Below are positions 1 through 63,865 of a stretch of DNA of 64,000 nucleotides, in pieces; the first letter of the stretch is position 1; each line of letters opens with the position of its first letter. The translations under genes were made by a program, and so were the position numbers. The stretch lies in assembly GCF_006345805.1 (NCBI RefSeq), contig NC_043016.1, positions 11,532,001 to 11,596,000 of the forward strand. The letters run 5' to 3'. The DNA is from Octopus sinensis. Its lineage: Eukaryota. The notes under the pieces were generated by a model, which did not search any database, was not told where the DNA came from, and saw nothing but the letters and a program-made list of their open reading frames with translations.

Positions 1-171
1 ACAATTCTTAACCCTTTCGCTACCATAACAAAACCCTTTAACAAACTCTAAGCCAGTGTTTCCCCTTACATTGGGGTTTGTACAAATTGCCAGTGTTTAG
101 TAAAATTATTGTATTTTCTAGTATACAATTCAACATAGTATATAGTGTAAACATTAAAACATTGCCACATA

Positions 172-1482: not shown

Positions 1483-1611
1483 AAAAAATATGTATATATA
1501 TGTGTGTGTGTGTGTGTGTGTATTTTTTATATATATAATGGAATAATACTACTATGAAGCATTGTGTAGGATATACTGTCAATTTTACTGTTTGTGTATA
1601 TATATATATAC

Positions 1612-2040
1612 ATATAAAAACACCATCCGAGCGTGGCCGTTCGCCAGCCGTCGTCTGGCACCTGTGTCGGTGGCACATAAAAAACACCATCCGAGCGTGG
1701 CCGTCTGCCAGCCTCGTCTGGCACCTGTGTCGGTGGCACATAAAAAACACCATCCGAGCGTGGCCGTCTGCCAGCCTCGTCTGGCACCTGTGTCGGTGGC
1801 ACATAAAAAACACCATCCGAGCGTGGCCGTTTGTCAGCCTCGTCTGGCACTGTGTCGGTGGCACATAAAATCACCCACTACACTCTCGGAGTGGTTGGCG
1901 TTAGGAAGGGCATCCAGCTGTAGAAACACTGCCAGATCTGACTGGCCTGGTGCAGCCTTCGGGCTCCCCAGACCCCAGTTGAACCGTCCCACCCATGCTA
2001 GCATGGAAAGCGGACGTTATATGATGATGATGAAGATGAT
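1612..2040 (+). mobile_element. RTE LINE 3' end (family C) with four tandem 62-63-bp units
   Basis: GGCACATAAAAAACACC recurs at 1672, 1735, 1798, 1860; followed by GGCGTTAGGAAGGGCATCCAGCTG...GGACGTTA and a (GAT)n tail. Confidence 0.85.
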
Positions 2041-3172: not shown

Positions 3173-3530
3173 ATATCATCATCGTCGTTTAACATCCGTT
3201 TTCCATGCTGCTGCAGGTTGGACGGTTTGACTGGAGGCCACACCAGGCTCCCTTCCAATCTGGCAATGTTTTCTACAGCTGGATGCCCTTCCTAACGCCT
3301 ACCACTCTGAGAGCATAGTGGGTGCTTTTTACGTGCCACCGGCACAGGAGCCAGTCAGGCAGCACTGGCATTGGCTACATTTGGATGGTGCTTTTTACAT
3401 GCTACTGGCACAGGAGCCAATCGGGTCGGGGTGACTGGCATCAACTACATTTGGATGGTGCTTTTTCGTCCCACTGGCACGGGGAGCCAGTCAAGCGGCA
3501 CTGATAACAACCCATGCATAAATGGTGCTT
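3173..3530 (-). mobile_element. RTE LINE 3' end (family C)
   Basis: Reverse complement of the 1612-2040 type, (CAT)n at the left end, several diverged repeat units. Confidence 0.85.
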
Positions 3531-4696: not shown

Positions 4697-4894
4697 TTGA
4701 CCCATTAGTGTTTGAACCAGCCATATCCGGCTCAAATATTCCAGCTGTTTTATGTTCAAACTAGCAAGATTCAGCCCTTTACACCTACCCTACAACATCA
4801 TTCTAAAATTAAATAAACACACCATTAAAATTTGAAAGCTACAATAGAAATAGATATTACATTCAACAGAGTAATCTGAATGCTAAAGAATTGA
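4697..4894. mobile_element. piggyBac-type TTAA MITE, family 2 (decayed)
   Basis: Degenerate TTAACCCTTTAGCA...TGCTAAAGGGTTAA ends; homologous to 8339, 53113 and 56614 copies. Confidence 0.75.
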
Positions 4895-6429: not shown

Positions 6430-6752
6430 GGTACTGGTGCCATGTAAAAAGCATTGGTGATGGTACCACACAAAAAGCACTGGTGTCAATGCTACATAAA
6501 AAGGACTGGTGATGGTGCCACATAAAAAGCACCAGTGCTGGCATCATGGAAAAAGCACTGATGATGGTGCCACATAAAAAGCACTCTGTAAACTCTGTAT
6601 TCTCTGTAAACTGGTTGACATTAGGAAGGGCAACTGTAGAAAGAATACCAAAACTTACAATGGAACCCAGTGTGACTCCTGGTCTTGCTAGCTCCTGTCA
6701 AACCATTCAACCCATGCCATCATGGAAAAATGGTCATTAAATGATGATGATG
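6430..6752 (+). mobile_element. RTE-type 3' end (family C variant) with six short approximately 26-bp units
   Basis: Tandem GGTGCCACATAAAAAGCACT-like units, then GTTGACATTAGGAAGGGC and a (GAT)n tail. Confidence 0.75.
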
Positions 6753-8249: not shown

Positions 8250-8835
8250 CTATATTTCATGTGTCTTGGTCATTGGACTGCAGCCATTCTTAGGCACCAC
8301 CTTGAAAGGTTCCCAGTCAACCCCAGTACTTTTTTTTTTTAACCATTTAGCATTCAGATTATTGCAACAAATGTAAAGCTCATTAATTTACATTGTTTTT
8401 AATTAATCATGCATTATTTAGTAACTTAGAGATTTCAGTGATGTGACTATTTCCTTTTAGAATGGCATTGTAGGGTTGGTGTAAGAGGTAGTATCTGGCC
8501 GGTTTGAAACTAATACAGGTAGAATAGCTTGGATGGATACGGCCAGTTCAAATACTAAAGGGTTAAATCCTGGTACTTAATCTATTAGTCTCTTTTTGCT
8601 GAACCACTAAGTTACAGGGGTCATAAACACACCAGCACCAGTTATCAAGCAGTGCTGGGAAAGAAACACACACATACGCACATATATACGAAGGGCTTCT
8701 TTCAGTTTCTGTCTACCAAATCTACTCACAAGGCTTTGGTCAGTCCAAGACTATGGTAGAAGACACTTGCCCAATGTGCCACATGGTGGGATTGAACCTG
8801 GGACCATGTGGTTGGGAAGCAAGCTTCTCACCACC
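8250..8835 (-). mobile_element. SINE family A split by a TTAA MITE
   Basis: 3' part at 8250-8338 and 5' part at 8567-8835 are collinear once the MITE is removed. Confidence 0.8.
8339..8566. mobile_element. piggyBac-type TTAA MITE, family 2
   Basis: TTAACCATTTAGCATT...ATACTAAAGGGTTAA; TTAA at both ends. Confidence 0.85.
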
Positions 8836-9601: not shown

Positions 9602-9817
9602 CTTCTACTTGTTTCAATCATCATTAGATTGCAGCCATGCTAGGGTGCTCCCTTGAAGAATGTGAGTCAAGCAAATTGTCCTAGTACTTATTTTTTTATG
9701 AAGGCCTAATACTCATTTTATCAGTGTGTTTGGCTTAAACGCTAGCTGACAGGGATGTAAACATACACCACCAAATGTCAAGTGGTGATGACAGACAATC
9801 ACACACTCACACACACA

Positions 9818-9862
<45 letters not shown>

Positions 9863-9887
9863 GCACACACATGTGCATATATATATA

Positions 9888-9925
<38 letters not shown>

Positions 9926-10395
9926 GTAAGAGAACCATCCGAACGTGGCCATTGCCAGTACCGCCCCGACTGGTCTCCGTGCCAGTGGCACATAAAAAGC
10001 ACCATCCGTTCGTGGCCGTTTGCCAGCTCTGTCTGGCACCTGTGCGGGTGGCACGTAAAAAGCACCCACTACACTCACGGAGTGGTTGGCGTTAGGAAGG
10101 GCATCCAGCCGTAGAAACATTGCCAGATAAGACTGGGCCTGGTGCAGCCTTCTGGCTTCCCAGACCCCAGTTGAACTGTCCAACCCATGCTAGCATGGAA
10201 AGCGGACGTTAAACAATGATGATGATGATGATATATAACAGGCTTCTTTCAGTTTCCATCGACTAAACTCGCTCACAAGGTTTTTGTTGACCCAGGGCTA
10301 TGGTAGAAGACACTTGTCCAAGGTGACATGCAGTGGGACTGTACCCAGAACCCTGTGGTTGTGAAGCAAGCTACTTACCACGCAGCCATGCCTAC
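9600..10395 (-). mobile_element. SINE family A with a family C insertion in its internal microsatellite
   Basis: 3' half at 9600-9800, microsatellite at 9800-9925, 5' half at 10235-10395. Confidence 0.8.
9930..10232 (+). mobile_element. RTE LINE 3' end (family C)
   Basis: Two diverged repeat units with GGCAC(A/G)TAAAAAGCACC, conserved 3' UTR, (GAT)n tail. Confidence 0.9.
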
Positions 10396-17919: not shown

Positions 17920-18578
17920 CTAACCGCATAATTCAACGTTCAGTCCCACCTCATGGCACCTTGGGCAAGTGTCTTCCACTGTATCCTTGGGCCAACCAAA
18001 GACTTGTGAGTGGTTTTGGTAGACAGAAACTAAAAGAAACCTGTAGTGTGTGTGTGTGTTGTGCTGTGTTGTATGTGTGTTTGAGAGTCTGTGTGAGTGT
18101 GTGTGAATATTTACATCTCCTTCTCTTGACGCTGTGTGATGGCTGTAAATGAGTGTCACTGTCACACAAGCAGTGTCGTTCATTTCCAATATTCTGCAAG
18201 AACATGTCAGGCCATAGAGAAATTATTACTTCACTCGAAAACAGGTAAAGGTTGGTGACAGGAAGGGCATCCATCTGTAGAAAATCTGTAGTTGTGATAT
18301 CTGTGCCGGTGGCACGTAAAAAGCACCATCCGAACATAGCCTGCGCCAGCGCCGCCTCGACTGGCTTCCGTGCCAGTGGAACATATAAAGCACCAACCAA
18401 TCGTGGTACGTAAATAGCACCCACTACACTCACGGAGTGGTTGGCGTTAGGAAGGGCATCCAGCTGTAGAAACACTGCCAGATCAGACTGGAGCCTGGTG
18501 CGCCTCCTGGCTTCCCAAACCCCAGTCGAACCATCCAACCCATGCTAGCATGGAAAACGGATGTTAAACGATGATGAT
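17920..18578 (+). mobile_element. SINE (A head, RTE-like tail; 17920-18290) followed by a family C RTE 3' end (18300-18578)
   Basis: CACCTTGGGCAAGTGTCTT head and GGTGACAGGAAGGGCATCC tail; then GGCACGTAAAAAGCACC units and (GAT)n. Confidence 0.8.
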
Positions 18579-20231: not shown

Positions 20232-20540
20232 TATATATATACATACATACATATACATGTGTCTACATATATAAACAAACACACACACATGCACATATAT
20301 ATATACATACACGGATAGATAGACCAGCTTCAATTAAGCAAAAGATTCAAAGGTTTTCACAGAATCTTTTAGAAATATGATACTTGCAGATGTTAAGAAA
20401 CATCAGAAAATAACTAAATGGGTTCATAATTCATTCGATCAAAATTCTTCAAGACATGGCCACAGTCTAACGACTGAAACAAGTGAAAGAAAAATGTAAA
20501 TAAATACATAAATAAACTAGGAGGTTCGTTTCATAAGCAT

Positions 20541-22287
20541 TTAACCCTTTCGTTACCAACCTGGCTGAAACCACTTCTGGCTCTGTTGTACAAATGCCTT
20601 GTTTTCATAAATTTTGAATTAAAATCTTCCACCAAACCTTAGTCACAATTTATGTTCCTAACACTAGCTTAATGATAACTAATTTATTTTACTAAATTCT
20701 TTGTTATATTGAAAATTAATTGAAAGAAACACAGAGCATCTCAGCAGAAATATGGTGACAAAAGGGTTAAAATATATAATAGAGAAACAATTCTTAACCC
20801 TTTCGTTACCAACCTGGCTGAAACTGGCTCTGACTCTGTAGTACAAATGTCTTGTTTCCATAAGTTTTGAATTAAAATCTTCCACCAAATCTTAGTCACA
20901 ATTTATGTTCCTAACACTAGCTAATGATAACTAATTTATTTTACTAAATTCTTTGTTATATTGAAAATTAATTGAAAGAAACACAGAGCATCTCAGCAGA
21001 AATATGGTGACAAAAGGGTTAAAATATATAATAGAGAAACAATTCTTAACCCTTTCGTTACCAACCTGGCTGAAACTGGCTCTGACTCTGTAGTACAAAT
21101 GTCTTGTTTCCATAAGTTTTGAATTAAAATCTTCCACCAAATCTTAGTCACAATTTATGTTCCTAACACTAGCTTAATGATAACTAATTTATTTTACTAA
21201 ATTCTTTGTTATATTGAAAATTAATTGAAAGAAACACAGAGCATCTCAGCAGAAATATGGTGACAAAAGGGTTAAAATATATAATAGAGAAACAATTCTT
21301 AACCCTTTCGTTACCAACCTGGCTGAAACTGGCTCTGACTCTGTAGTACAAATGTCTTGTTTCCATAAGTTTTGAATTAAAATCTTCCACCAAACCTTAG
21401 TCACAATTTATGTTCCTAATATTAGCTTAATGATAACTAAGTTATTTTACTAAATTCTTTGTTATATTGAAAATTAATTGAAAGAAACACAGAGCATCTC
21501 AACAGGAATATGGTAACAAAAGGGTTAAAATATATAATAGAGAAACAATTCTTAACCCTTTCGTTACCAACCTGGCTGAAACTGGCTCTGACTCTGTAGT
21601 ACAAATGTTTTGTTTTCATAAGTTTTGAATTAAAATCTTCCACCAAACCTTAGTCACAATTTATGTTCCTAATATTAGCTTAATGATAACTAAGTTGTTT
21701 TACTAAATTCTTTGTTATATTTAAAATTAATTGAAAGAAACACAGAGCATCTTAGCAGAAATATGGTGACAAAAGGGTTAAAATATATAATAGAGAAACA
21801 ATTCTTAACCCTTTCGTTACCAACCTGGCTGAAACTGGCTCTGACTCTGTAGTACAAATGTCTTGTTTCCATAAGTTTTGAATTAAAATCTTCCACCAAA
21901 CCTTAGTCACAATTTATGTTCCTAATATTAGCTTAATGATAACTAAGTTATTTTACTAAATTCTTTGTTATATTTAAAATTAATTGAAAGAAACACAGAG
22001 CATCTCAACAGGAATATGGTAACAAAAGGGTTAAAATATATAATAGAGAAACAATTCTTAACCCTTTCGTTACCAACCTGGCTGAAACTGGCTCTGACTC
22101 TGTAGTACAAATGTTTTGTTTTCATAAGTTTTGAATTAAAATCTTCCACCAAACCTTAGTCATAATTTATGTTCCTAACACTAGCTTAATGATAACTAAG
22201 TTATTTTACTAAATTCTTTGTTATATTTAAAAGTAATTGAAAGCAACACAGAGCATCTCAATAGAAATACAGTAACAAAAGGGTTAA
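20541..22287. repeat. Tandem array of seven complete piggyBac-type TTAA MITEs (family 1), period 252-253 bp
   Basis: Units start at 20541, 20794, 21046, 21299, 21552, 21805, 22058; each runs TTAACCCTTTCGTTACC...GGT(A/G)ACAAAAGGGTTAA, separated by the identical spacer AATATATAATAGAGAAACAATTC. Confidence 0.95.
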
Positions 22288-38291: not shown

Positions 38292-38741
38292 TTAACCCTT
38301 TTGTTACCATATTTCTGTTGAGATGCTCTGTGTTTCTTTCAATTACTTTCAATTTAACAAAGAATTTAGTAAAATAACTTAGTTATCATTCAGTTAGTGT
38401 TAGGAACATAAATTGTGACTAAGGTTTGGTGGAAGATTTTAATTCAAAACTTATGAAAACAAGACATTTGTACTACAGAGCCAGAGGCAGTTGGTATCAA
38501 AAGGGTTAAGAATTGTTTATATATTTTAACCCTTTTGTGACCATATTTCTGTTGAGATGCTCTGTGTTTCTTTCAATTAATTTTAAATAAAACAAAGAAT
38601 TTAGTAAAATAACTTAGTTATCATTCAGCTAAATTGTGACTAAGGTATGGTGAAAGATTTTAATTCAAAACCTATGAAAACATGACATTTGTACTACAGA
38701 GCCAGAGGCGGTTTCAGGCTGGTTGGTAATGAAAGGGTTAA
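38292..38741. mobile_element. Tandem dimer of family 1 TTAA MITEs, inverted relative to the 20.5-kb array
   Basis: Units 38292-38509 and 38526-38741; spacer GAATTGTTTATATATT equals the reverse-complemented array spacer minus 7 nt. Confidence 0.9.
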
Positions 38742-44430: not shown

Positions 44431-44454
44431 ATACCAGTATGCCCACCCATCTAA

Positions 44455-45132
44455 CTCTTTAGCATTCATTTTTTTCTGTTAAATGTAATTCTTGTTTGTT
44501 CTCATTGTTTTCAATTAATCATGCATTATCTTGTAGCTTTGAGGTCTTGATGATGTGACTGTTTAGTTTTAGAAAGACCTTGTCTAGCTGACCAAAACTG
44601 ACCAGATTTGGCCATTTGAACATAAGCCAGATAAAAATATTTAGGACATGGCCAGTTTAAGTGCTAAAGGGCCAACCCTATTAATATTCAGATTACTCTA
44701 TTAAATATATATATATTTCTTTACTACCCTCAAGGGGCTAAACACAGAGGGGACAAACAAGGACAGACAAAGGGATTAAGTCGATTACATCGACCCCAGT
44801 GGGTAACTGGTACTTAATTTATCGACCCCGAAAGGATGAAAGGCAAAGTCAACCTCGGCGGAATTTGAACTCGGAACGTAACGACAGACGAAATACGGCT
44901 ACGCATTTTGCCCGGCGTGCTAACGTTTCTGCCAGCTCGCCGCCTTACTCTATTAAATATAATGTTTCTTTATTCTCATTGTTTTCAATTAATCATGCAT
45001 AACCTTGGTGATTTGAGATTTCAATCATGTTATGGATTTGTAGAATGACATTGTATGATAGGGGTGAGAGACTAAATCTGATCAGTTTTAACATAAAACA
45101 GTATATTTGAGTTGGATATGGCTGGTTTAACT
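44455..45132. mobile_element. Two adjacent family 2 TTAA MITEs (44455-44675 and 44680-45132); the second is split by a SINE
   Basis: CTTTAGCATTC..TGCTAAAGGG ends; TTTTCAATTAATCATGCAT body occurs twice. Confidence 0.75.
44716..44944 (-). mobile_element. SINE family B, young, with 17-bp TSD
   Basis: TTACTCTATTAAATATA at 44693-44709 and 44945-44961. Confidence 0.93.
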
Positions 45133-45939: not shown

Positions 45940-46159
45940 CACACAACACACATATAGTAGAATAAGAAACAGAAATAGAAAGTCCTTGGTTCAGAATTAT
46001 ATATTTGAAAATAAGGGATAGAAAAGGCTTTTCTGACAATTTTTCCACTTTAATAATTACATGTTTATAAGTTATTAGGTGTTTACACCAGCTTACGAAC
46101 ATCTAATTATAAAGTGGAAAAATTATCAGAAAAGCTATCTCTATTCATTTTTGCCTATA

Positions 46160-46227
<68 letters not shown>

Positions 46228-46230
<3 letters not shown>

Positions 46231-46505
46231 GCAGCGCCGCCCTGACTGGCCTCCATGCAGGTGGCACGTAAAAAGCACCATCCGATTGTGGCCGTTGCCA
46301 GCCTGCATTGGCTCCTGTGCCAGTGGCACGTAAAAAACACCCACTACACTCACGGAGTGGTTGGCATTAGGAAGGGCATCCAGCTGTAGAAACACTGCCA
46401 AATCAGACTGGAGCCTGGTGCAGCCTTCTGGCTTCCCAGACCCCAGTTGAACCGTCCAACCCATGCTAGCATGGAAAGCGGACATTAAACAATGATGATG
46501 ATGAT
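46228..46505 (+). mobile_element. RTE LINE 3' end (family C)
   Basis: Two repeat units, conserved UTR, (GAT)n tail; between (TA)n and (CA)n. Confidence 0.9.
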
Positions 46506-46757
46506 ACACACACACACACATACACACACATAATGTAGAGAGACAGATTGACAGACAGATATAAATGAAGGTAGTATAATGGTTTCAAATTAGTGTTGTT
46601 GCTGTGTAAAAATTTTAAACCACCTGTACAAATTCTTCCATTGACATTGTGGTACCCACTCAAGAATTAAAAGTGAAATTTTTTTTAATTTCTGTATTTT
46701 ACGTTTGTATCCTTTACTGATTCTTTTCTTTTTCTTTTTTTTTTATAACTCTTTCAG

Positions 46758-46839: not shown

Positions 46840-47449
46840 ATGTCATCCTCATCACCTCCTCAACCACTGCCATCCTCACCTTCATCACCGTCCAATCTTC
46901 AGACCACTAATCAATTATCAGCTGTTGCCAATGATCATTGCTTCCAATTGGTGACTGAATTCCCCTCAAATATACCGCTTATGCAGGGTAACAGACACAC
47001 AACCTCACAGACTTTTCCCGACAATGCATCCAACAGTACTAGCACCAACAACAACAACATTAGCCTCACCTCAAACATCTTCCCAATTCCTTTGACCACA
47101 TCAGCTGGACTGGCTTACGCATTGACTGAAAACAATAAAATTGGGATACAACGCCTCCTTAAGCCCAAAAACCCTTCGGATAAAGATGCAAAAAACAACA
47201 ACACGAGTAACAGCAATAACAACAACAATAATAATAATAATAATAATAATGTCATTTCAGGTAGCATTAACAATGTGAATACTCAGAAACAGGATCCCCA
47301 TTCACAGGGTCACAGACTTTTGGTAGATTCTAACACAGTGGCAGCAGTGGTAGCAGCTGCTGCCAACATAAACCAAGTCCAAAATCTAAATGGATCTCAG
47401 TTTCAGAAATTCAGTTTCAGCCCCGGTCGGCTTCTGAAGGATCAGTCTC

Positions 47450-47483
<34 letters not shown>

Positions 47484-47890
47484 GATCCAAGGGGAGATAA
47501 CTATGCCACACCAGGAAGACAAATCACCCTCATCGTCGTCATCAACGTCATCGTCATCTACATTGCCCATCACATTTGCTCCCGATCAATCTCAGCAGCA
47601 GGCTAGCACGGCTTCAGTGGCTGCGTCCTCCTCAGCTAACGTCGTCACATCAGCGGCAGCAGCAGCAGTTGCCGTTCAACCTGTGAGCTCTCAAAACAGT
47701 AATTCTATTCAATCTATTCAATACCAGTCCGCTACTGCTGCTGCTGCTGCTGCTGCTAATACAAACCAAGGTGCAACAAATGACACAATGCTAAGCGCTA
47801 CCATAAACTATAATGACAATGAAATGCTGTCAGATGGCACTTTTGATGTGTCTGTGAGAAACAATCTGACTCTTGATGAAGGAATACTTG
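46840..47890 (+). CDS. First coding exon of an unidentified protein with a low-complexity (polyN, polyQ, polyS, polyA) N-terminus, probably a nuclear regulator
   Basis: 350 codons plus 1 nt open; AAACCATG start; higher GC than the flanks; ends CTTG|GTAATA donor (phase 1), followed by T-rich intron-like sequence. Confidence 0.85.
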
Positions 47891-48564
47891 GTAATATCAC
47901 AATTATATTTTATATTTTTTTCTTTTTTCTTTTGTTGTTCTTGTTGTTAATATTGTTGTTTTATCTGTTATTGTTTAGCCCCAGGTCGATCCTGACTGAA
48001 CCAGCACAACGGAAACCATCTTATCCAAGACAATCACGCTCTTCTCTCAAGCATTATGTTTCTAAGATTACATTAACTAAAATGCTCCTTCTTACTCTGA
48101 TGGGGGCAGGCTAGTGATTTGCAGGAGGGTCAGCTACTGTTTCTAACACATTCAAATACTATGCAGTGAGGCCCTTCATTGATTGTGACAGTGTTCTTGT
48201 TAAAGTTAACATTTTGTTTTTCTTTCATGAATGTTCAGCTTTATAGTTTACAGTTGGTTGATACTATTTAGCTAAAGACAGGGCTAATGAAGTATTGAAG
48301 ACCAAAATATATATTATTCTATATACATTCACACAAATTTGAAATGTAAACAACCGATGCTGGTGTGTTTACATTCCTCATTCGAGTTACCTCTATTTCC
48401 AGATCTTCGTGTTTTGAAAGTTTCTCTGTTTGTTTTAGAGAAACATTGTCATCTGTTGGTATTGATACATCGATTAGAAAGCAATTATTTCTTGGTGATA
48501 TCTGACAACTATATCTAGCCTATTGACCTTAATTTCTCTATCTTTGTGTATTGGTATATCCCTA

Positions 48565-53034: not shown

Positions 53035-53330
53035 TTAACCTTTTCATTACCATATTTCTGTTTTAATTAATTTTAAAACTGATGAAGAATTTAATAAAAT
53101 AACAGTCACTATTAACCCTTTAGCATTTAAACCAGTTATATCTGGCCAAAATAAATTCTACCTGTTTTATGTTCAAACTGGCCAGATCCAGTCTCTCACA
53201 CCTACCCTACAGTATCATTTTAAGAATATACAAATTTCAAAGCTATGAGATAATGCAGGATTAATTCAAAACAAGGTAAATAAATAATCTTTACATCTGA
53301 CAGAGTAATCTGAACGCTGGAAGAGTTAAG
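53035..53330. mobile_element. Family 1 MITE fragment abutting a family 2 TTAA MITE (53113-53330)
   Basis: TTAACCCTTTAGCATTTAAACCAG..GAAGAGTTAA. Confidence 0.8.
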
Positions 53331-54140: not shown

Positions 54141-54654
54141 AAGAGATGATACAAGTGGTAATTTCCCATATATTTGTACTTTGGTTGGATGATGCTTGGT
54201 ACCTTGGGTGTCTTCTATTGCCTTGGCTCACCCACAGCCTTGTAAGTGGACTTGGTAGATGGAAACTGAATGAAGCCCATTGTATGTATGTGTGTATGTC
54301 TTTGAATCTGCATTTGTCACCCACCACTGCTTGACAATGGTGTTGGTGTGTTTATGTATCCATAAACTTAGTGGTTTAGCAAAAAATACTGATAGAATAA
54401 AATACCAGGCTTTAAAAAAAAAATTAAGTACCAGGATCGATTCATTCAAATGAAAATTCTTCAAGGTCGCAGTCAAATTCCACATGACTGAAATAAGTAA
54501 ACTATAAAAGATAAGATAGAATGAAGTGATGGAAACAAAAATAAATGAGATGCAAACATCTCAAAGTGACATCATGTAGTAGAATTCATCTTCATGATCA
54601 ATCAATCAATATGAAAAATATACTGTCGTACGAGGAAAGTCTGTTTCTTATTTA

Positions 54655-54880
54655 AACCGTTCGGCATTCAGATTACTCTTATCAAATGTTATATTCATTC
54701 ATTCACATTGTTTTGAATTAATCATGTGTCATCTTGTAGCTTTGAGATTTTGATGATGCATTTGTTTACTTTTGGAATGACATTGCAGGGTAGTTGTAAG
54801 AGGCCTGATCTGGTCTCAGTTTGAACACAAAACATGTAGAATATTTGGGCCTGGTATGGCTGGTTTGAATGCTAAAGCAT
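54655..54880. mobile_element. Family 2 TTAA MITE
   Basis: GCATTCAGATTACTCT..TTGAATGCTAAAG. Confidence 0.8.
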
Positions 54881-55029: not shown

Positions 55030-55275
55030 TTTTAACCCGTTTTGATACCAACGAACCCAAGTCTGCCCCTGGTCCTGTAGTACAAAATCCATGTTTTAAA
55101 ATAATCAAAATATAAAGCTTTCATTAAGATTTTATGTTAATTTATGCTAATTTATGTTAGTGACAACCAGCTTAAATAGTAGTAGTGTTAGTTTACTAAA
55201 TTCTTCATTAATTTCAAAATTAATTAAATCAAAGGCAGTGCATTTCAGCAGAAATATGGTAACAAAAGGGTTAAT
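55030..55275. mobile_element. Family 1-related TTAA MITE, solo
   Basis: TTAACCCGTTTTGATACC...GGTAACAAAAGGGTTAA. Confidence 0.85.
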
Positions 55276-55364
55276 TTTGTAATTGAAAAAATTATATATT
55301 TTAAAAATCCACAGTCCGCCATCATTTGGTGCTGCAATGCACAAATTGATTACTGACCTACAGA

Positions 55365-55755
55365 GTCTCTCTCTCTCCCCCTCTCCATTCTCTCCTTTTT
55401 CTTTGTCTCCTCTCCCTATCTCTATTTTTCTCTCCTCTTTCTCCCTCTCTTTTCCTCTCCCTTCTTTCCTTCCTCTCTCCCTCTTTCTCTTTTCTCCCTT
55501 TTTCTTTCTCTTCTATTTCTCTGTCTCCTCTCTTTCTCTTCTTTCACTTTCCCCTCTCTCCCTTCTCTCCTTTTTCTTTGTCTCCTCTCCCTATCTCTTT
55601 TTTCTCTCCCTCCCTCTCTTTTTCTCTCCCTCTCTCCTCTTTTCTCTCCTTTCTCTTTCTCTTTTATTTCTCTCTCCCTCTCTTTCTCTCTTTCCATTTC
55701 CCCCCCTCTCCATCTCTTTTTCTCCTACCCACTCTCTCACCCTAACCCTCTCTTT
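55365..55755. repeat. Approximately 390-bp polypyrimidine/polypurine tract
   Basis: Almost only C and T on the plus strand. Confidence 0.95.
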
Positions 55756-56534: not shown

Positions 56535-56613
56535 ACAAACTAACAAAGCTAAAGTGAATAATGTACATGTGTTTTATAGTGCATGTTTATTTGGCAAAAA
56601 AAAATTTTTTTTT

Positions 56614-56839
56614 TAACCCTTTAGTATTTAAACCAGCCATATCTGGCCAAAATATTTCATCTGTTTTATGTTCAAACTGACCAGATCCAGGCTCTCACAC
56701 CTACCCTACAATGTTATTCTACATTAAGTAATTACAACATCAAGATCTTGAAGATATGAGACAATGCATGATTAATTAAAATCAATGGGAATCAATAAGC
56801 ATTATGTTTGATAGAATAATCTGAACACGAAAGGGTTAA
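56614..56839. mobile_element. Family 2 TTAA MITE
   Basis: TTAACCCTTTAGTATT...GAAAGGGTTAA. Confidence 0.88.
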
Positions 56840-58003: not shown

Positions 58004-58330
58004 TTTAACCCTTTTGTTACCATATTTTTGTTGAGATACACTGTATTTCAATTAATTTTGAAAATAAGAGCTTAATGAAATAATTTCATCATCATTATTA
58101 AGATGGTTTATAGTAGATAAAAATAACACAAAATTTTGATGGAAGCTTTTAATTTGGATCACCTTAACCCTTAAGTTACTATATCTCTGTTGAAAAACAC
58201 TGATTTTACTTTAATTAATTTTGAAAATAATGAATTTATTATTAATCTGGTGTTTGGAAATAAATTAACATGAAATCTTGATAGGTTTTAATTTAGATTT
58301 AGATAAAGTCTGTATGATAGAACCCCTGGT
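58004..58330. mobile_element. Two adjacent family 1-related MITE pieces (further piece at about 59070-59270)
   Basis: TTAACCCTTTTGTTACCATATTT start; second TTAACCCTT start at about 58164. Confidence 0.65.
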
Positions 58331-58584: not shown

Positions 58585-59065
58585 CTAGCAGTATCGCTCG
58601 GGTTTGTAAGGGAAATAACTATATAAGCATTTTTAGAGTTGTAGCCAAAAAATAGCAAAAAAATGCATTAAAAATGGGGAAAAAATGATGGTAAATTTTT
58701 TTTAAATCGTTGACTCATCGTAGACATTTTTAGAGAGTTACTTCCCTTATCGAAAAAATGCATTAAAATGGAAAAAAATGATGGTAAATTATTTTTAAAA
58801 TCGTAGACTCATCGTAGACATTTTTAGAGAGTTACTTCCCTTATATAATAGCGAAAAAATGCATTGAAAGGGAAAAAAATGATGGTAAATTATTTTTAAA
58901 ATCGTAGACTCTCATAGACGCGCGCTAATACCCAGAAGGGCTCAATGTGAATCACGACTATAAGATACCCGGTTTTGGTTAAACTGCACCGCAAAATGTG
59001 GGAGTAGTTAGGAATCTAAGTTGTAGGAGACAGACAGCACACAACCTCACTTTTATATATAAAGA
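58585..59065 (-). mobile_element. Non-autonomous Helitron, same family as 23358
   Basis: On minus: A|TC...CTAG|T ends; internal approximately 95-bp unit repeated; 3' hairpin shortened. Confidence 0.85.
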
Positions 59066-59934
59066 TTTTTCTTCAAATACATTGCCATTGATTCAATAAA
59101 ATTTTGAAAATAATGAAGAATTTAGTAAAATAATTTTGTCATTATTAAGACGAGATTTGGAACTTAAATTAATCTGAAATTTTGAAGTAAGGTTTTAATT
59201 TAAATATTTAAAAACATGAAGTTTGTATATAGACCCAGAGGTGGTCTATGATTGGTTGGTATCAAAAATCTAAAGTGGTAGGGTTTGGCCTGATAGTGAT
59301 TGTGCCACCGTTTCTAATAGATTGGACGACTACACAAGGTTATGTCTTTTGTTTGTTCTAAGAGGGTAGGTTGAAATGATGAAGATCCTGAGTTTCTGAT
59401 AGGAAAAAAATAATAAATAAAAACAGGTTTACCCTCATGGGATCTAACTACAGATAAATGAAAGCCTGAAGGGAAATTGTCATATAATGATGGTTGGAAT
59501 CTGATACAGACAAATGATACACAGAAATATCATGCAGAACATTGCAGAGCTCAAATCTTGCCAAATATGCACCAGTTACTGTATTTAATTGACTAAAATA
59601 TAATCTTTTATGCAGAATTTGGCCTTGTTTCAAAACAATTTCTCAAGTGAGAAATCAGACTCCACAGTCATAAACAATTAGTTGAAGTATTAAATTAGTT
59701 TCTTAGCTTTGTTTACATTATCGCTACAGATGCTAAACCCCCACCAACTCTGACAGTCTCTTCTAAGAATTGCACATCCTCAACATGGCAAAGACTTCAG
59801 AACCGGAAAATACTTTTAAATCTCCTGCAACAATAACAATAATTCTTTACTAAAATTCAGATGAAACTCACAATGGCGTACTTGCTCTTACACATGGGAT
59901 AGAGTTACTACTATTTATTTATCTGAACAGCTAT

Positions 59935-63259: not shown

Positions 63260-63561
63260 TTCTGTGTTAGATAATAAGTGAGTTATATACCTCTTATCAT
63301 AATCACCCATTGTCATATTAATTGTGGGATTGCTTGGTATCGCATTGATGTTTTTCTGGTTTATATATTTTTTTCTGTTTGTTTTTGTATTCTTTGCTTT
63401 GCCGTACTCTACTAGGCATATATCAATGTCATATCAATATATGGCAATTTTCTTTCCTTCTTTTTCTTTCATACATGTCATAAACCGTTATAGTTCAGCG
63501 CATACATGATTGATTTTTCCACACAATTTGTAGCAACATTTATTTTGTTTCATTTTACATT

Positions 63562-63602
<41 letters not shown>

Positions 63603-63606
<4 letters not shown>

Positions 63607-63865
63607 GTCCATGCTGGTGGCACATAAAAAGCACCAACTGATTGTAGCCACTGCCAGCCTCCTCTGGCCCCTGTGCCGGTGGCATGTAAAAAGCACCCAC
63701 TATACTCAGGGAGTGGTTGGCATTAGGAAGGGCATCCAGCTGTAGAAACACTGCCAGATCAGATGGGACCCTGGTGCAGCCTCCTGGCTTTCCAGACGCC
63801 AATCGAACCGTCCAACCCATGCTAGCATGGAAAATGGACGTTAAACGAGGATGATGATGATGATG
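63603..63865 (+). mobile_element. RTE LINE 3' end (family C)
   Basis: Two repeat units, conserved UTR, (GAT)n tail; between (TA)n and (TG)n. Confidence 0.9.

Follow-up and report, generated by a model that had tools for sequence, protein, structure and literature searches.

Seven complete TTAA-bounded MITEs are arranged head to tail in the Octopus sinensis DNA analysed here (a window of 64 kb), each joined to the next by the same spacer, and the two units at the edges of this array carry their private changes in complementary halves. The spacer also recurs, with a small deletion, inside a dimer of the same family that lies in the same window between unrelated flanks. The array probably grew by unequal exchange from a dimer of two slightly different copies, and the dimer seems to have spread as a block together with its spacer.

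Anatomy of the array

TRF reported a single array at 20541-22287, with a period of 253, 6.9 copies, 96% matches, 0% indels and a score of 3186; the repeat unit is thus composed of a MITE plus a spacer (230 + 23 bp), as an earlier sequence-only reading of this DNA had proposed. Units and spacers were delimited by splitting the array at the exact string AATATATAATAGAGAAACAATTC (Table 1), and the units are numbered u1 to u7 from left to right. The same reading had described seven units of 230 bp, six invariant spacers of 23 bp, and both TIRs together with an own TTAA at each end of every unit. The count of seven, the six identical spacers and the unit ends are all confirmed, every unit (7/7) starting with TTAACCCTTTCGTTACCA and ending in ...ACAAAAGGGTTAA; the length needs correction, because only six units measure 230 bp and u2 has 229 bp, and the units are not identical. 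Among them we found 27 variable alignment columns, of which 26 are substitutions, and pairs of units differ by 0-19 substitutions. The TIR inside the TTAA, CCCTTTYGTYACCA, is 14 nt long and imperfect, with 1-2 mismatches, and is reduced to about 12 nt in u7. The edges of the array coincide exactly with unit ends and the spacer is absent from either outer flank. In the whole window the end motif was counted 22 times, the expectation being 0.05.

The identity of the spacers within the array is statistically unremarkable: the probability of finding 0 variable columns among 23 is 0.06 on the basis of all units and 0.29 on the basis of the interior units. Constraint on the spacer, deduced from its invariance, was rejected on these values (P = 0.06-0.29). 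A hairpin is formed at the junction (ΔG -10.8 and -13.5 kcal/mol, z -3.9 and -6.5) because two TIRs face each other there, and it is therefore no evidence of function. Known RNA families and tRNAs were sought across the window and none was found in the array or elsewhere in it.

Table 1. Coordinates of the array, its units and spacers, and related copies in the 64-kb window.
Feature	Position	Strand	Remarks
Whole array	20541..22287	+	7 MITE units and 6 spacers, period 253 bp, TTAA at each outer end
u1, left edge unit	20541..20770	+	230 bp; private changes only at 32-71; ancestral C34 and G40 kept
Spacer 1	20771..20793	+	AATATATAATAGAGAAACAATTC
u2	20794..21022	+	229 bp; 1-bp deletion, otherwise equal to u3
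Spacer 2	21023..21045	+	identical to spacer 1
u3	21046..21275	+	230 bp
Spacer 3	21276..21298	+	identical to spacer 1
u4	21299..21528	+	230 bp; differs from u6 at 1 site
Spacer 4	21529..21551	+	identical to spacer 1
u5, mosaic	21552..21781	+	230 bp; 58 and 65 u7-like, middle u4/u6-like, 204 and 217 u1-like
Spacer 5	21782..21804	+	identical to spacer 1
u6	21805..22034	+	230 bp
Spacer 6	22035..22057	+	identical to spacer 1
u7, right edge unit	22058..22287	+	230 bp; private changes only at 106-214; right TIR ~12 nt
Third junction, at window edge	1..25	+	ACAATTC (3' end of spacer, 7 bp) followed by TTAACCCTTTCGCTACCA; 24/25 identical to array junction
Second locus, dimer	38292..38741	-	same family, TTAA-bounded; flanks unrelated to array flanks
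Dimer unit L2B	38292..38509	-	218 bp; 11-bp deletion near 5' end and 1-bp gap
Dimer spacer	38510..38525	-	AATATATAAACAATTC; array spacer minus 7 bp, 16/16 retained bases identical
Dimer unit L2A	38526..38741	-	216 bp; internal deletion of 14 bp
Right-end fragment of the family	53035..53111	-	meets a copy from a second MITE family at a TTAA
Solo older relative	55032..55274	+	~34% substitution divergence from array units; TTAA at both ends
Spacer-like stretch beside the solo, inverted	55275..55304	-	TTAA-AATATATAATTTTTTCAATTACAAAA-TTAA; marginal resemblance
Two old partial copies	58005..58310	-	one ends GGGTTAA, 5'-truncated copy directly after
Old 5' partial copy	59092..59267	-	array MITE family

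Classification of the unit

The unit fits a non-coding, non-autonomous DNA transposon (MITE) of piggyBac/TTAA type. About 222 bp lie between its two TTAAs, and its ORFs, of at most 69 aa, are spurious; for a junction-spanning ORF of 69 aa no homologue was found in assembly-derived protein sets. We assign the family to the piggyBac type because its TIR opens with CCCTTT, a start also found in npiggy1_Mm of lemur, a bona fide non-autonomous piggyBac element (TTAA-CCCTTTGCACTCG, with CCCTTT ends). Moreover, the 14 nt of CCCTTTYGTYACCA agree in length and terminus with the TIRs of 12-19 bp and CC[C/T]T terminus that are given for piggyBac-type MITEs by Wang et al. (PMC2872659), so that the earlier identification of the TTAA-CCC...GGG-TTAA ends as a piggyBac signature stands. 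Kolobok elements, the other TTAA superfamily that was compared, have different termini beside their TTAA, AG/AGGRR (PMC6004289), and a Kolobok (T2-type) MITE is ruled out by the CCC...GGG ends of the unit. A full TTAA is present at all independent ends of the family (outer ends of the array and of the dimer, the solo copy at 55 kb and the end at 58005), which excludes a Tc1/mariner (Stowaway-like) MITE with a TA-only duplication. Helitron and Helentron repeats have no TIRs, use AT or TT as insertion site, and carry a 3' hairpin with a CTRR end; tandem repeats associated with them were discarded as candidates, the units here having TIRs and TTAA at both ends.

Within the 64 kb there are nine full copies, one solo relative and five or more partial relatives; neither a transposase gene nor an autonomous element with these TIRs is present within the window. 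Excision of each array unit by a transposase is plausible, since the TIRs are largely intact. In a paper on the repeats of O. vulgaris, 6 piggyBac families are recorded, whose 474 recent insertions cover 3.67 Mb; their mean of about 7.7 kb is unusually large. As no structure is given there, to connect them with the array MITE would be speculation.

Other copies of the family and of the spacer

The array and the dimer have only scattered, non-collinear dispersed repeats in common in their flanks, and the flanking sequence includes what we take to be a SINE. Because the immediate flanks are unique and the outer TTAA is the exact limit of both blocks, array and dimer are not the products of a segmental duplication. 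The spacer cannot be considered local DNA either, since the same sequence minus 7 bp joins the dimer between unrelated flanks and its 3' end recurs at positions 1-7 of the window. On this evidence we reject a capture of the spacer here in the course of the satellite birth that the earlier reading had considered possible.

Past its 18-bp TIR, the element at the start of the window has a similarity to the unit equal to the shuffled mean, and it was rejected as a longer relative. The inverted spacer-like stretch beside the solo copy is matched by a hand-built gapped pattern with 0.11 occurrences expected per window, and by unbiased alignment with P = 0.06; a spacer relic in the right flank of the array or in the flank of the 55-kb solo was rejected, as unbiased local alignments reached only P = 0.06 and 0.26. 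No paralogous empty site for the array, the dimer or the solo copy was found in the window. The junction pattern had 0 matches in metagenome, prokaryote-genome and viral collections, from all of which the host is absent, and a conserved internal 35-mer had 0 matches in the metagenome and prokaryote-genome collections. For an ORF of 424 aa an exact look-up likewise gave no record.

Probable traces of unequal exchange

All five private mutational events of u1 fall at positions 32-71 of the unit and all five of u7 at 106-214. The interior units have the state of u7 at the 5' end and that of u1 at the 3' end (P = 1/252). Because the private changes of the edge units fill complementary halves, as is predicted when interior units are hybrids of the 5' part of a right-hand copy (B) and the 3' part of a left-hand copy (A), this pattern supports unequal exchange from a heterodimer as the process that left its mark on the array. 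At positions 34 and 40, u1 has the state of both dimer units and of the old solo copy, and u2-u7 share a derived state. An event in a two-unit register is indicated by the near identity of u4 and u6 together with the bases at 58 and 65, which u5 has in common with u7. Moreover, C32 is shared by u1 and L2A and G176 by u7 and L2B, with 0 discordant sites; these two sites hint at a positional orthology of u1 with L2A and of u7 with L2B.

As in arrays derived from a transposon dimer, the junctions (six here) are identical, DNA foreign to the element is enclosed, and the edge units are unlike the interior hybrids. With 7 units here and 2 at the second locus, the repeat falls short of the hundreds or more of units of a classical satellite. 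By sequence the seven units of the array form one group, from which both dimer units are 6-9% away, and this supports growth of the array in place.

Proposed origin and spread of the block

We regard as fairly probable a history in which a heterodimer captured its spacer, was spread as a block by a piggyBac-type transposase acting in trans, and then expanded in place to seven units. Two slightly different copies in the same orientation, A on the left and B on the right, would have come to occupy two TTAA sites 16-23 bp apart, giving the heterodimer A-TTAA-spacer-TTAA-B. The A-spacer-B block, including the captured spacer, would then have spread as a single piece, the likeliest route being composite transposition, in which the transposase pairs the outermost left and right ends; it would have left copies at two places at least, and probably at three, in the window, each ending exactly in TTAA. 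The dimer at 20.5 kb would subsequently have expanded where it stood. Recombination out of register, pairing one copy's B with the other copy's A, would create an interior hybrid unit (5' part of B, 3' part of A); the event could be an unequal exchange between sister chromatids or homologues, or the misaligned repair of a break. More exchanges in one-unit and two-unit registers would lead to the array of seven.

The common spacer, the unrelated flanks and the exact outer TTAA ends argue that the MITE-spacer-MITE block spread as such, in which case it would predate at least one of the spacer-bearing loci. The same internal junction between unrelated flanks, with intact outer ends and TTAA, is characteristic of a mobile composite and is compatible with ectopic conversion too; all three spacer-bearing loci fall within 39 kb, a closeness that would fit local recombination as well. 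We infer that a transposase moved the block, and likewise the direction of the spread and a possible current mobility. All copies of the young subfamily in the window (identity of 86% or more) belong to a multimer block and 0 are solo; a sister TTAA MITE family of equal size is present there in at least 7 copies, 0 of them in a head-to-tail array. We tentatively suggest, as a possibility short of probable, that the young subfamily propagates mainly as a multimer: any left end could pair with any downstream right end, and blocks of two or more units would hop to new TTAA sites and regrow there by unequal exchange.

The dimer could alternatively have been made by ectopic gene conversion, an explanation that we consider unlikely. 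A solo MITE at 38.3-38.7 kb (and one at the window start) would have broken and been repaired from the array, its ends invading adjacent units, so that a stretch composed of the 3' half of a unit, the spacer and the 5' half of a unit was copied in and the old outer ends, with their TIRs and TTAA, stayed. Such an event accounts equally well for the shared spacer, the unrelated flanks and the precise limits at the TIRs, and it would involve loci just 16-20 kb apart on one molecule. Moreover, 5/210 sites differ from the array in the inner halves of the dimer and 11/224 in its outer halves, which is the predicted direction. This difference is however not significant (P = 0.2), the two sites that link u1 with L2A and u7 with L2B fall in the outer halves, which are expected under this model to come from an unrelated solo copy, and the event would be old given the distance of the dimer units from all array units. 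Independent double insertions at each locus, with every spacer being the original local DNA between neighbouring TTAA sites, are the documented origin of P-element and hobo dimers, and MITEs inserted next to or inside one another are frequent in plants and mosquitoes; here, however, the same 16 bases would have to lie between TTAAs at two unrelated loci (chance of about 4^-16), the third locus repeats the same 7 bases ahead of the TIR, and no homology outside the blocks suggests a repeated target, so that this origin is extremely improbable.

As to the mode of amplification, the sequence-only reading had allowed for unequal exchange or a circular intermediate, and the edge-unit pattern speaks for the former. 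A rolling circle (eccDNA) of MITE plus spacer, giving a concatemer that re-integrates, would produce the strictly uniform period and the identical junctions, and has been proposed for Bari1 arrays. We nevertheless think it very unlikely: a concatemer inserted by recombination would be expected to end at arbitrary, permuted points, but both blocks have their limits exactly at TIR and TTAA; units born identical should not give edge-unit changes in complementary halves; and a 23-bp-spaced circle junction is not known as a product of piggyBac-type excision. It could finally be argued that the true locus has 1-2 units and that the assembler over-expanded the repeat, since u2 and u3 differ by a 1-bp indel only and u4 and u6 at one site, and the copy number there depends on read length. 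The substitutions shared among units are nevertheless ordered (26 columns, with a gradient u1 / u2-u3 / u4-u6 / u7 and a mosaic u5), which argues against a simple duplication in the assembly, and a dimer with the same junction stands independently at the second locus; there is accordingly little chance that the array is an artefact.

Comparison with known systems

Full-size TTAA-MITE arrays and the route from dimer to array are already known, from Acropora and Drosophila respectively, and the octopus array adds a case; our search of the literature found no description of TTAA-MITE arrays in cephalopods. In the coral report on CMITE (Wang et al. 2010, PLoS One, PMC2872659), full-size TTAA MITEs form tandem head-to-tail arrays, some with similar gaps, and CMITE-IN consists of a MITE between 23-bp repeats, each bounded by TTAA, and behaves as a mobile block. 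The earlier statement that MITEs normally occur as solo insertions is thus broadly true, with these arrays as an exception described since 2010. Both systems have full-size piggyBac/TTAA-type MITEs placed head to tail, some of the coral arrays having gaps highly similar between repeats, and an interior unit of the octopus array has the same TTAA-23bp-TTAA-MITE-TTAA-23bp-TTAA layout as CMITE-IN. The comparison, made on the published text, also reveals differences: phylum and sequence are other, and the coral units have about 100 bp against about 222 bp here. The coral authors proposed replication slippage, and they describe neither a spacer common to arrays at different loci nor a hybrid signature of the edge units.

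In Drosophila, two insertions give a head-to-tail dimer that keeps target DNA in its junction and is expanded by unequal exchange; a hobo array of 13-19 copies has one 8-nt junction motif throughout (McGurk & Barbash 2018, Genome Res, PMC5932611). The octopus array resembles it in the dimer-to-array route with one junction motif. In Drosophila, however, two insertions at one and the same site made the junction, which is their target-site duplication and occurs at one locus only, whereas here it is TTAA-23bp-TTAA, from two neighbouring sites, and recurs at other loci.

Views on the change from transposon to satellite, and on the presence of one satellite in many short arrays, still draw for the most part on a small number of cases in insects, bivalves and frogs. 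The octopus array is a clean small example from another animal lineage, in which the repeat unit is a complete TTAA MITE and the two parent copies can still be recognised, and the recurrence of its junction elsewhere suggests that the block, besides growing, also spreads. If such TTAA-bounded blocks were numerous across the genome, they would be a direct sign that cut-and-paste transposition disseminates the seeds of arrays; otherwise, ordinary local expansion would be the case. Propagation as a multimer, if true, would mean that a transposase seeds one proto-satellite at many loci.

Three further systems share single features with the octopus array. In Xenopus, Xstir arrays reportedly ride on the Xmix (T2/Kolobok) MITE, a finding that is said to go back to Hikosaka et al. 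in 2000 and 2004. As far as the available accounts of Xstir and Xmix go, the ends of a TTAA-target transposon enclose a tandem array there too and have spread it through the genome, but what is repeated is just an internal part of the MITE, with ends of Kolobok AGGRR type, in contrast to the whole MITE with both TIRs and CCC...GGG ends found here. In composite transposons and macrotransposition, the outer ends of two copies act as one element and the intervening DNA travels with them; the classical cargo consists of genes between IS copies or Ac/Ds ends, whereas here it would be a spacer of 16-23 bp, the use of the outer ends being presumed. The "MITE multimers" of plants and mosquitoes (Jiang & Wessler 2001, via PMC5172404) also have several MITEs next to each other; as summarised in that secondary source, they differ in being nested or adjacent independent insertions, usually of mixed families or orientations; a repeated spacer and a regular period are lacking.

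Structure of the array and identity of its units

The tandem array of TTAA MITEs was resolved by TRF as 6.9 copies of a 253-bp period with 96% matches and no indels. Exact-string splitting on the 23-mer AATATATAATAGAGAAACAATTC gave six identical spacers and seven units (u1 to u7, from left to right) of 230, 229, 230, 230, 230, 230 and 230 bp; the seven intact MITEs with an invariant 23-bp spacer described in the sequence-only reading are thus confirmed, with the exception of one unit of 229 bp. All seven units share the 5' start TTAACCCTTTCGTTACCA and the 3' end ...ACAAAAGGGTTAA, and inside their TTAAs lies an imperfect inverted repeat of 14 nt (CCCTTTYGTYACCA, 1-2 mismatches), which is shorter (about 12 nt) in u7. 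Both outermost boundaries of the array are exact unit ends, no resemblance to the spacer was found in either outer flank, and on its left the array is flanked by the tail of a tRNA-like SINE copy. The end motif occurs 22 times across the 64-kb window against an expectation of 0.05.

The units differ at 27 alignment columns, 26 of which are substitutions, and pairs of units are separated by 0-19 substitutions. The probability of no variable column among the 23 of the spacer is 0.06 when all units are considered and 0.29 for the interior ones, so that the invariance of the spacer is unremarkable beside the variation of the units. The junctions can fold as an imperfect 18-bp hairpin (ΔG -10.8 and -13.5 kcal/mol, z -3.9 and -6.5), an automatic consequence of two TIRs facing one another, which might, speculatively, promote replication errors. 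The array is real and tidy, yet unsurprising.

The unit is non-coding: the ORFs across it are all spurious and do not exceed 69 aa, and no homologue of the junction-spanning ORF was found in protein sets. Its family has nine full copies in the window, besides a single older solo relative and five or more partial copies, and a full TTAA is present at every independent end. Elements of piggyBac type are recognized by TTAA duplications and a TIR of 12-19 bp with terminus CC[C/T]T (PMC2872659), and a bona fide non-autonomous piggyBac element of the mouse lemur has the ends TTAA-CCCTTTGCACTCG (PMC2997546). Kolobok, another superfamily targeting TTAA, has AG/AGGRR termini (PMC6004289) and was rejected, as the unit ends differently. 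Because its TTAA ends and TIR match the criterion and the lemur element and not Kolobok, we file the unit as a probable piggyBac/TTAA-type MITE, which supports the piggyBac-type ends noticed earlier from the sequence. No transposase of the piggyBac kind was found within the 64-kb window, where the only transposase trace is a mariner-like HTH_48 fragment in a 126-aa ORF, a degraded mariner-like element. Searches of the window for Rfam families and tRNAs returned none.

Seven or more copies of a second MITE family, which matches the array unit in size (about 227 bp) and has TTAA-CCCTTT ends (TTAACCCTTTAGTATTT... / ...GAAAGGGTTAA), occur in the window; they are 70-79% identical to the copy taken as reference, and past the terminal bases the family shows no real likeness to the array unit. 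No head-to-tail array was found among these copies in the window; the tandem layout therefore seems a trait of the young subfamily (family copies at least 86% identical) and not of TTAA MITEs generally in the genome.

Coordinates of the features in the window
Feature	Position	Strand	Remark
Tandem array	20541-22287	+	seven units, six spacers
Dimer	38292-38741	-	units L2A and L2B
Older solo copy	55032-55274	+	
Spacer-like sequence	55275-55304	-	beside right end of solo copy
Spacer end and left TIR	1-25		
Second MITE family	8339-8566, 56613-56839, 53112-53329, 54652-54877, 44945-45130, 44452-44671, 4697-4836		reference: 56613-56839
Old array-family copy	58164-58310	-	ends GGGTTAA
5'-truncated array-family copy	58005-58163	-	abuts the preceding
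101-bp tandem repeat	58651-58919		2.8 copies, 87%
Mariner-like ORF, 126 aa	60366-60746	+	HTH_48 (Mos1-type mariner transposase HTH domain), E = 6e-07
424-aa ORF	46840-48114	+	
CT-rich tract	55366-55738		periodicities 57 and 150 bp
63-bp tandem repeat	1610-1870		4.1 copies, 96%
Related repeats	3321-3503, 6435-6585		GGTGCCACATAAAAAGCAC-like
Spurious ORFs (...FYVPPAQVPD...)	9713-10183, 17951-18538, 46141-46527, 63488-63820		from GGTGCCACATAAAAAGCAC-like repeats
tRNA-like SINE (examples)	170-420, 20440-20500		
Further tRNA-like SINE sites (examples)	535, 1447, 14086, 17467, 19244, 26676, 27525, 29446, 30663, 41864, 61533		

A spacer shared between loci

On the opposite strand, the dimer consists of two family copies (L2A and L2B) placed head to tail and joined by AATATATAAACAATTC, which is the array spacer less 7 bases; the remaining bases are identical (16/16) and TTAA stands on both sides. 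Moreover, the window itself begins with ACAATTC, the spacer's final 7 bases, and continues with the 18-bp left TIR TTAACCCTTTCGCTACCA; 24 of these 25 positions are identical to an array junction. Beyond this TIR the search for likeness to the array unit met unrelated sequence; a further dimer or array could be situated immediately upstream of position 1.

The array and dimer blocks both stop exactly at the outer TTAA; their immediate flanks are unique, and what the flanks have in common is limited to scattered, non-collinear dispersed repeats, which rules out segmental duplication as the source of the likeness. Double insertions made independently cannot account for 16 identical bases lying between two TTAAs at sites that are unrelated. 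MITE-spacer-MITE must have arrived as one block at one or more of the spacer-bearing loci, and the spacer is not DNA native to the locus.

The simplest mechanism offered by this anatomy would be block transposition, in which a transposase recognizing unit ends would bring a left end together with the right end of a unit further along, excise the multi-unit block and reinsert it at a TTAA. Ectopic repair is a serious competing explanation. If an earlier solo copy had broken and its two broken ends had invaded adjacent units of a nearby array for repair, the outcome would likewise be a dimer that has this spacer and keeps the outer ends of the solo copy. Dimer sites unlike any array unit are rarer in the inner halves (5/210) than in the outer ones (11/224), which is the direction expected of ectopic repair, but the difference lacks significance (P = 0.2). 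The sole two sites linking edge units to dimer units (C32, common to u1 and L2A, and G176, common to u7 and L2B) sit in the outer dimer halves and favour block transposition. We entertain, with some doubt, the idea that propagation across the genome occurs mainly in the multimer form; if true, the array would be of greater interest.

Growth of the array

The array units group together to the exclusion of L2A and L2B, the two dimer units differing by 6-9% from the array units and by 6.9% from one another; this clustering indicates that the expansion to seven occurred at the array locus itself. Each edge unit has five private mutational events: those of u1 are confined to unit positions 32-71 and those of u7 to positions 106-214, a split whose probability of being so clean is 1/252. 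Interior units carry the u7 state in their 5' part and, at the private sites of u7, the u1 state in their 3' part. Such a pattern would be expected if unequal exchange had taken place in a heterodimer A-spacer-B, A and B being its left and right parent copies: B of one chromatid would pair with A of the other, giving A-spacer-(5'B/3'A hybrid)-spacer-B, and both original units would remain as array edges. At positions 34 and 40, u1 has the state of both dimer units and of the old solo copy, u2-u7 the derived one. Furthermore, a 1-bp indel is all that separates u2 from u3, and a single site u4 from u6; u5 is mosaic, with the bases of u7 at positions 58 and 65. These relations suggest at least one duplication in a two-unit register.

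The same marks would be left by replication slippage or misaligned break repair in place of classical unequal crossing-over. A rolling-circle origin is not favoured, since under it the units should have started out identical and the array could end anywhere; in fact the edge units differ in a polarised manner and the ends are precise. Of the two amplification routes proposed earlier, unequal exchange is thus backed by the u1/u7 split, and the circular intermediate is disfavoured.

Comparison with known systems

Arrays enclosed by MITE ends and spreading by transposition reportedly exist in Xenopus (Xstir/Xmix). Full-size TTAA MITEs in tandem arrays, some with highly similar gaps, were described in Acropora corals in 2010, together with a mobile composite consisting of a MITE between 23-bp repeats that have TTAA at both of their ends (PMC2872659), the same layout as an interior unit of the Octopus array. 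The Drosophila hobo element formed a dimer by double insertion and then, by unequal exchange, an array of 13-19 copies with a single junction motif (PMC5932611). Plant "MITE multimers", being nested or adjacent independent insertions (PMC5172404), differ in kind. Given the Acropora, hobo and Xenopus precedents, the Octopus array joins an already known class, and what is noteworthy is the spacer common to loci and the readable heterodimer signature. In the literature we found no description of cephalopod arrays of such TTAA MITEs; a repeat paper on O. vulgaris counts 474 recent piggyBac insertions covering 3.67 Mb, their structure not being given.

Other repeats and ORFs

Beside the solo copy, TTAA-AATATATAATTTTTTCAATTACAAAA-TTAA (minus-strand reading) is spacer-like but inverted relative to the element. 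The likeness is marginal (0.11 expected per window for the gapped pattern, P = 0.06 by unbiased alignment); precise excision of a neighbouring element might have left such a spacer orphaned, or AT-rich sequence might have produced the likeness by chance. Just downstream of the solo copy there is a long low-complexity tract rich in CT. An old copy of the array family and a 5'-truncated one abut without spacer, a head-to-tail arrangement of another kind. A single copy split by an insertion may account for the old partial copies at 59.1-59.3 kb and 58.2-58.3 kb, and a 101-bp tandem repeat occupies part of the gap of about 780 bp between them.

The tRNA-like SINE, which has a microsatellite end, is very abundant in the window; nothing was called on it by ARAGORN or Rfam, and it presumably resembles the common octopus SINE, which would suggest an octopod host. 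A 63-bp tandem repeat contains GGTGCCACATAAAAAGCAC-like motifs; repeats of this kind recur throughout the window, some of them giving similar spurious ORFs, and probably form a dispersed family whose members are tandemly repeated internally. A 424-aa ORF rich in runs of Ser, Asn, Gln and Ala, for which neither a Pfam match nor an exact record was found, may be a genuine low-complexity coding exon; it is some 25 kb away from the array.
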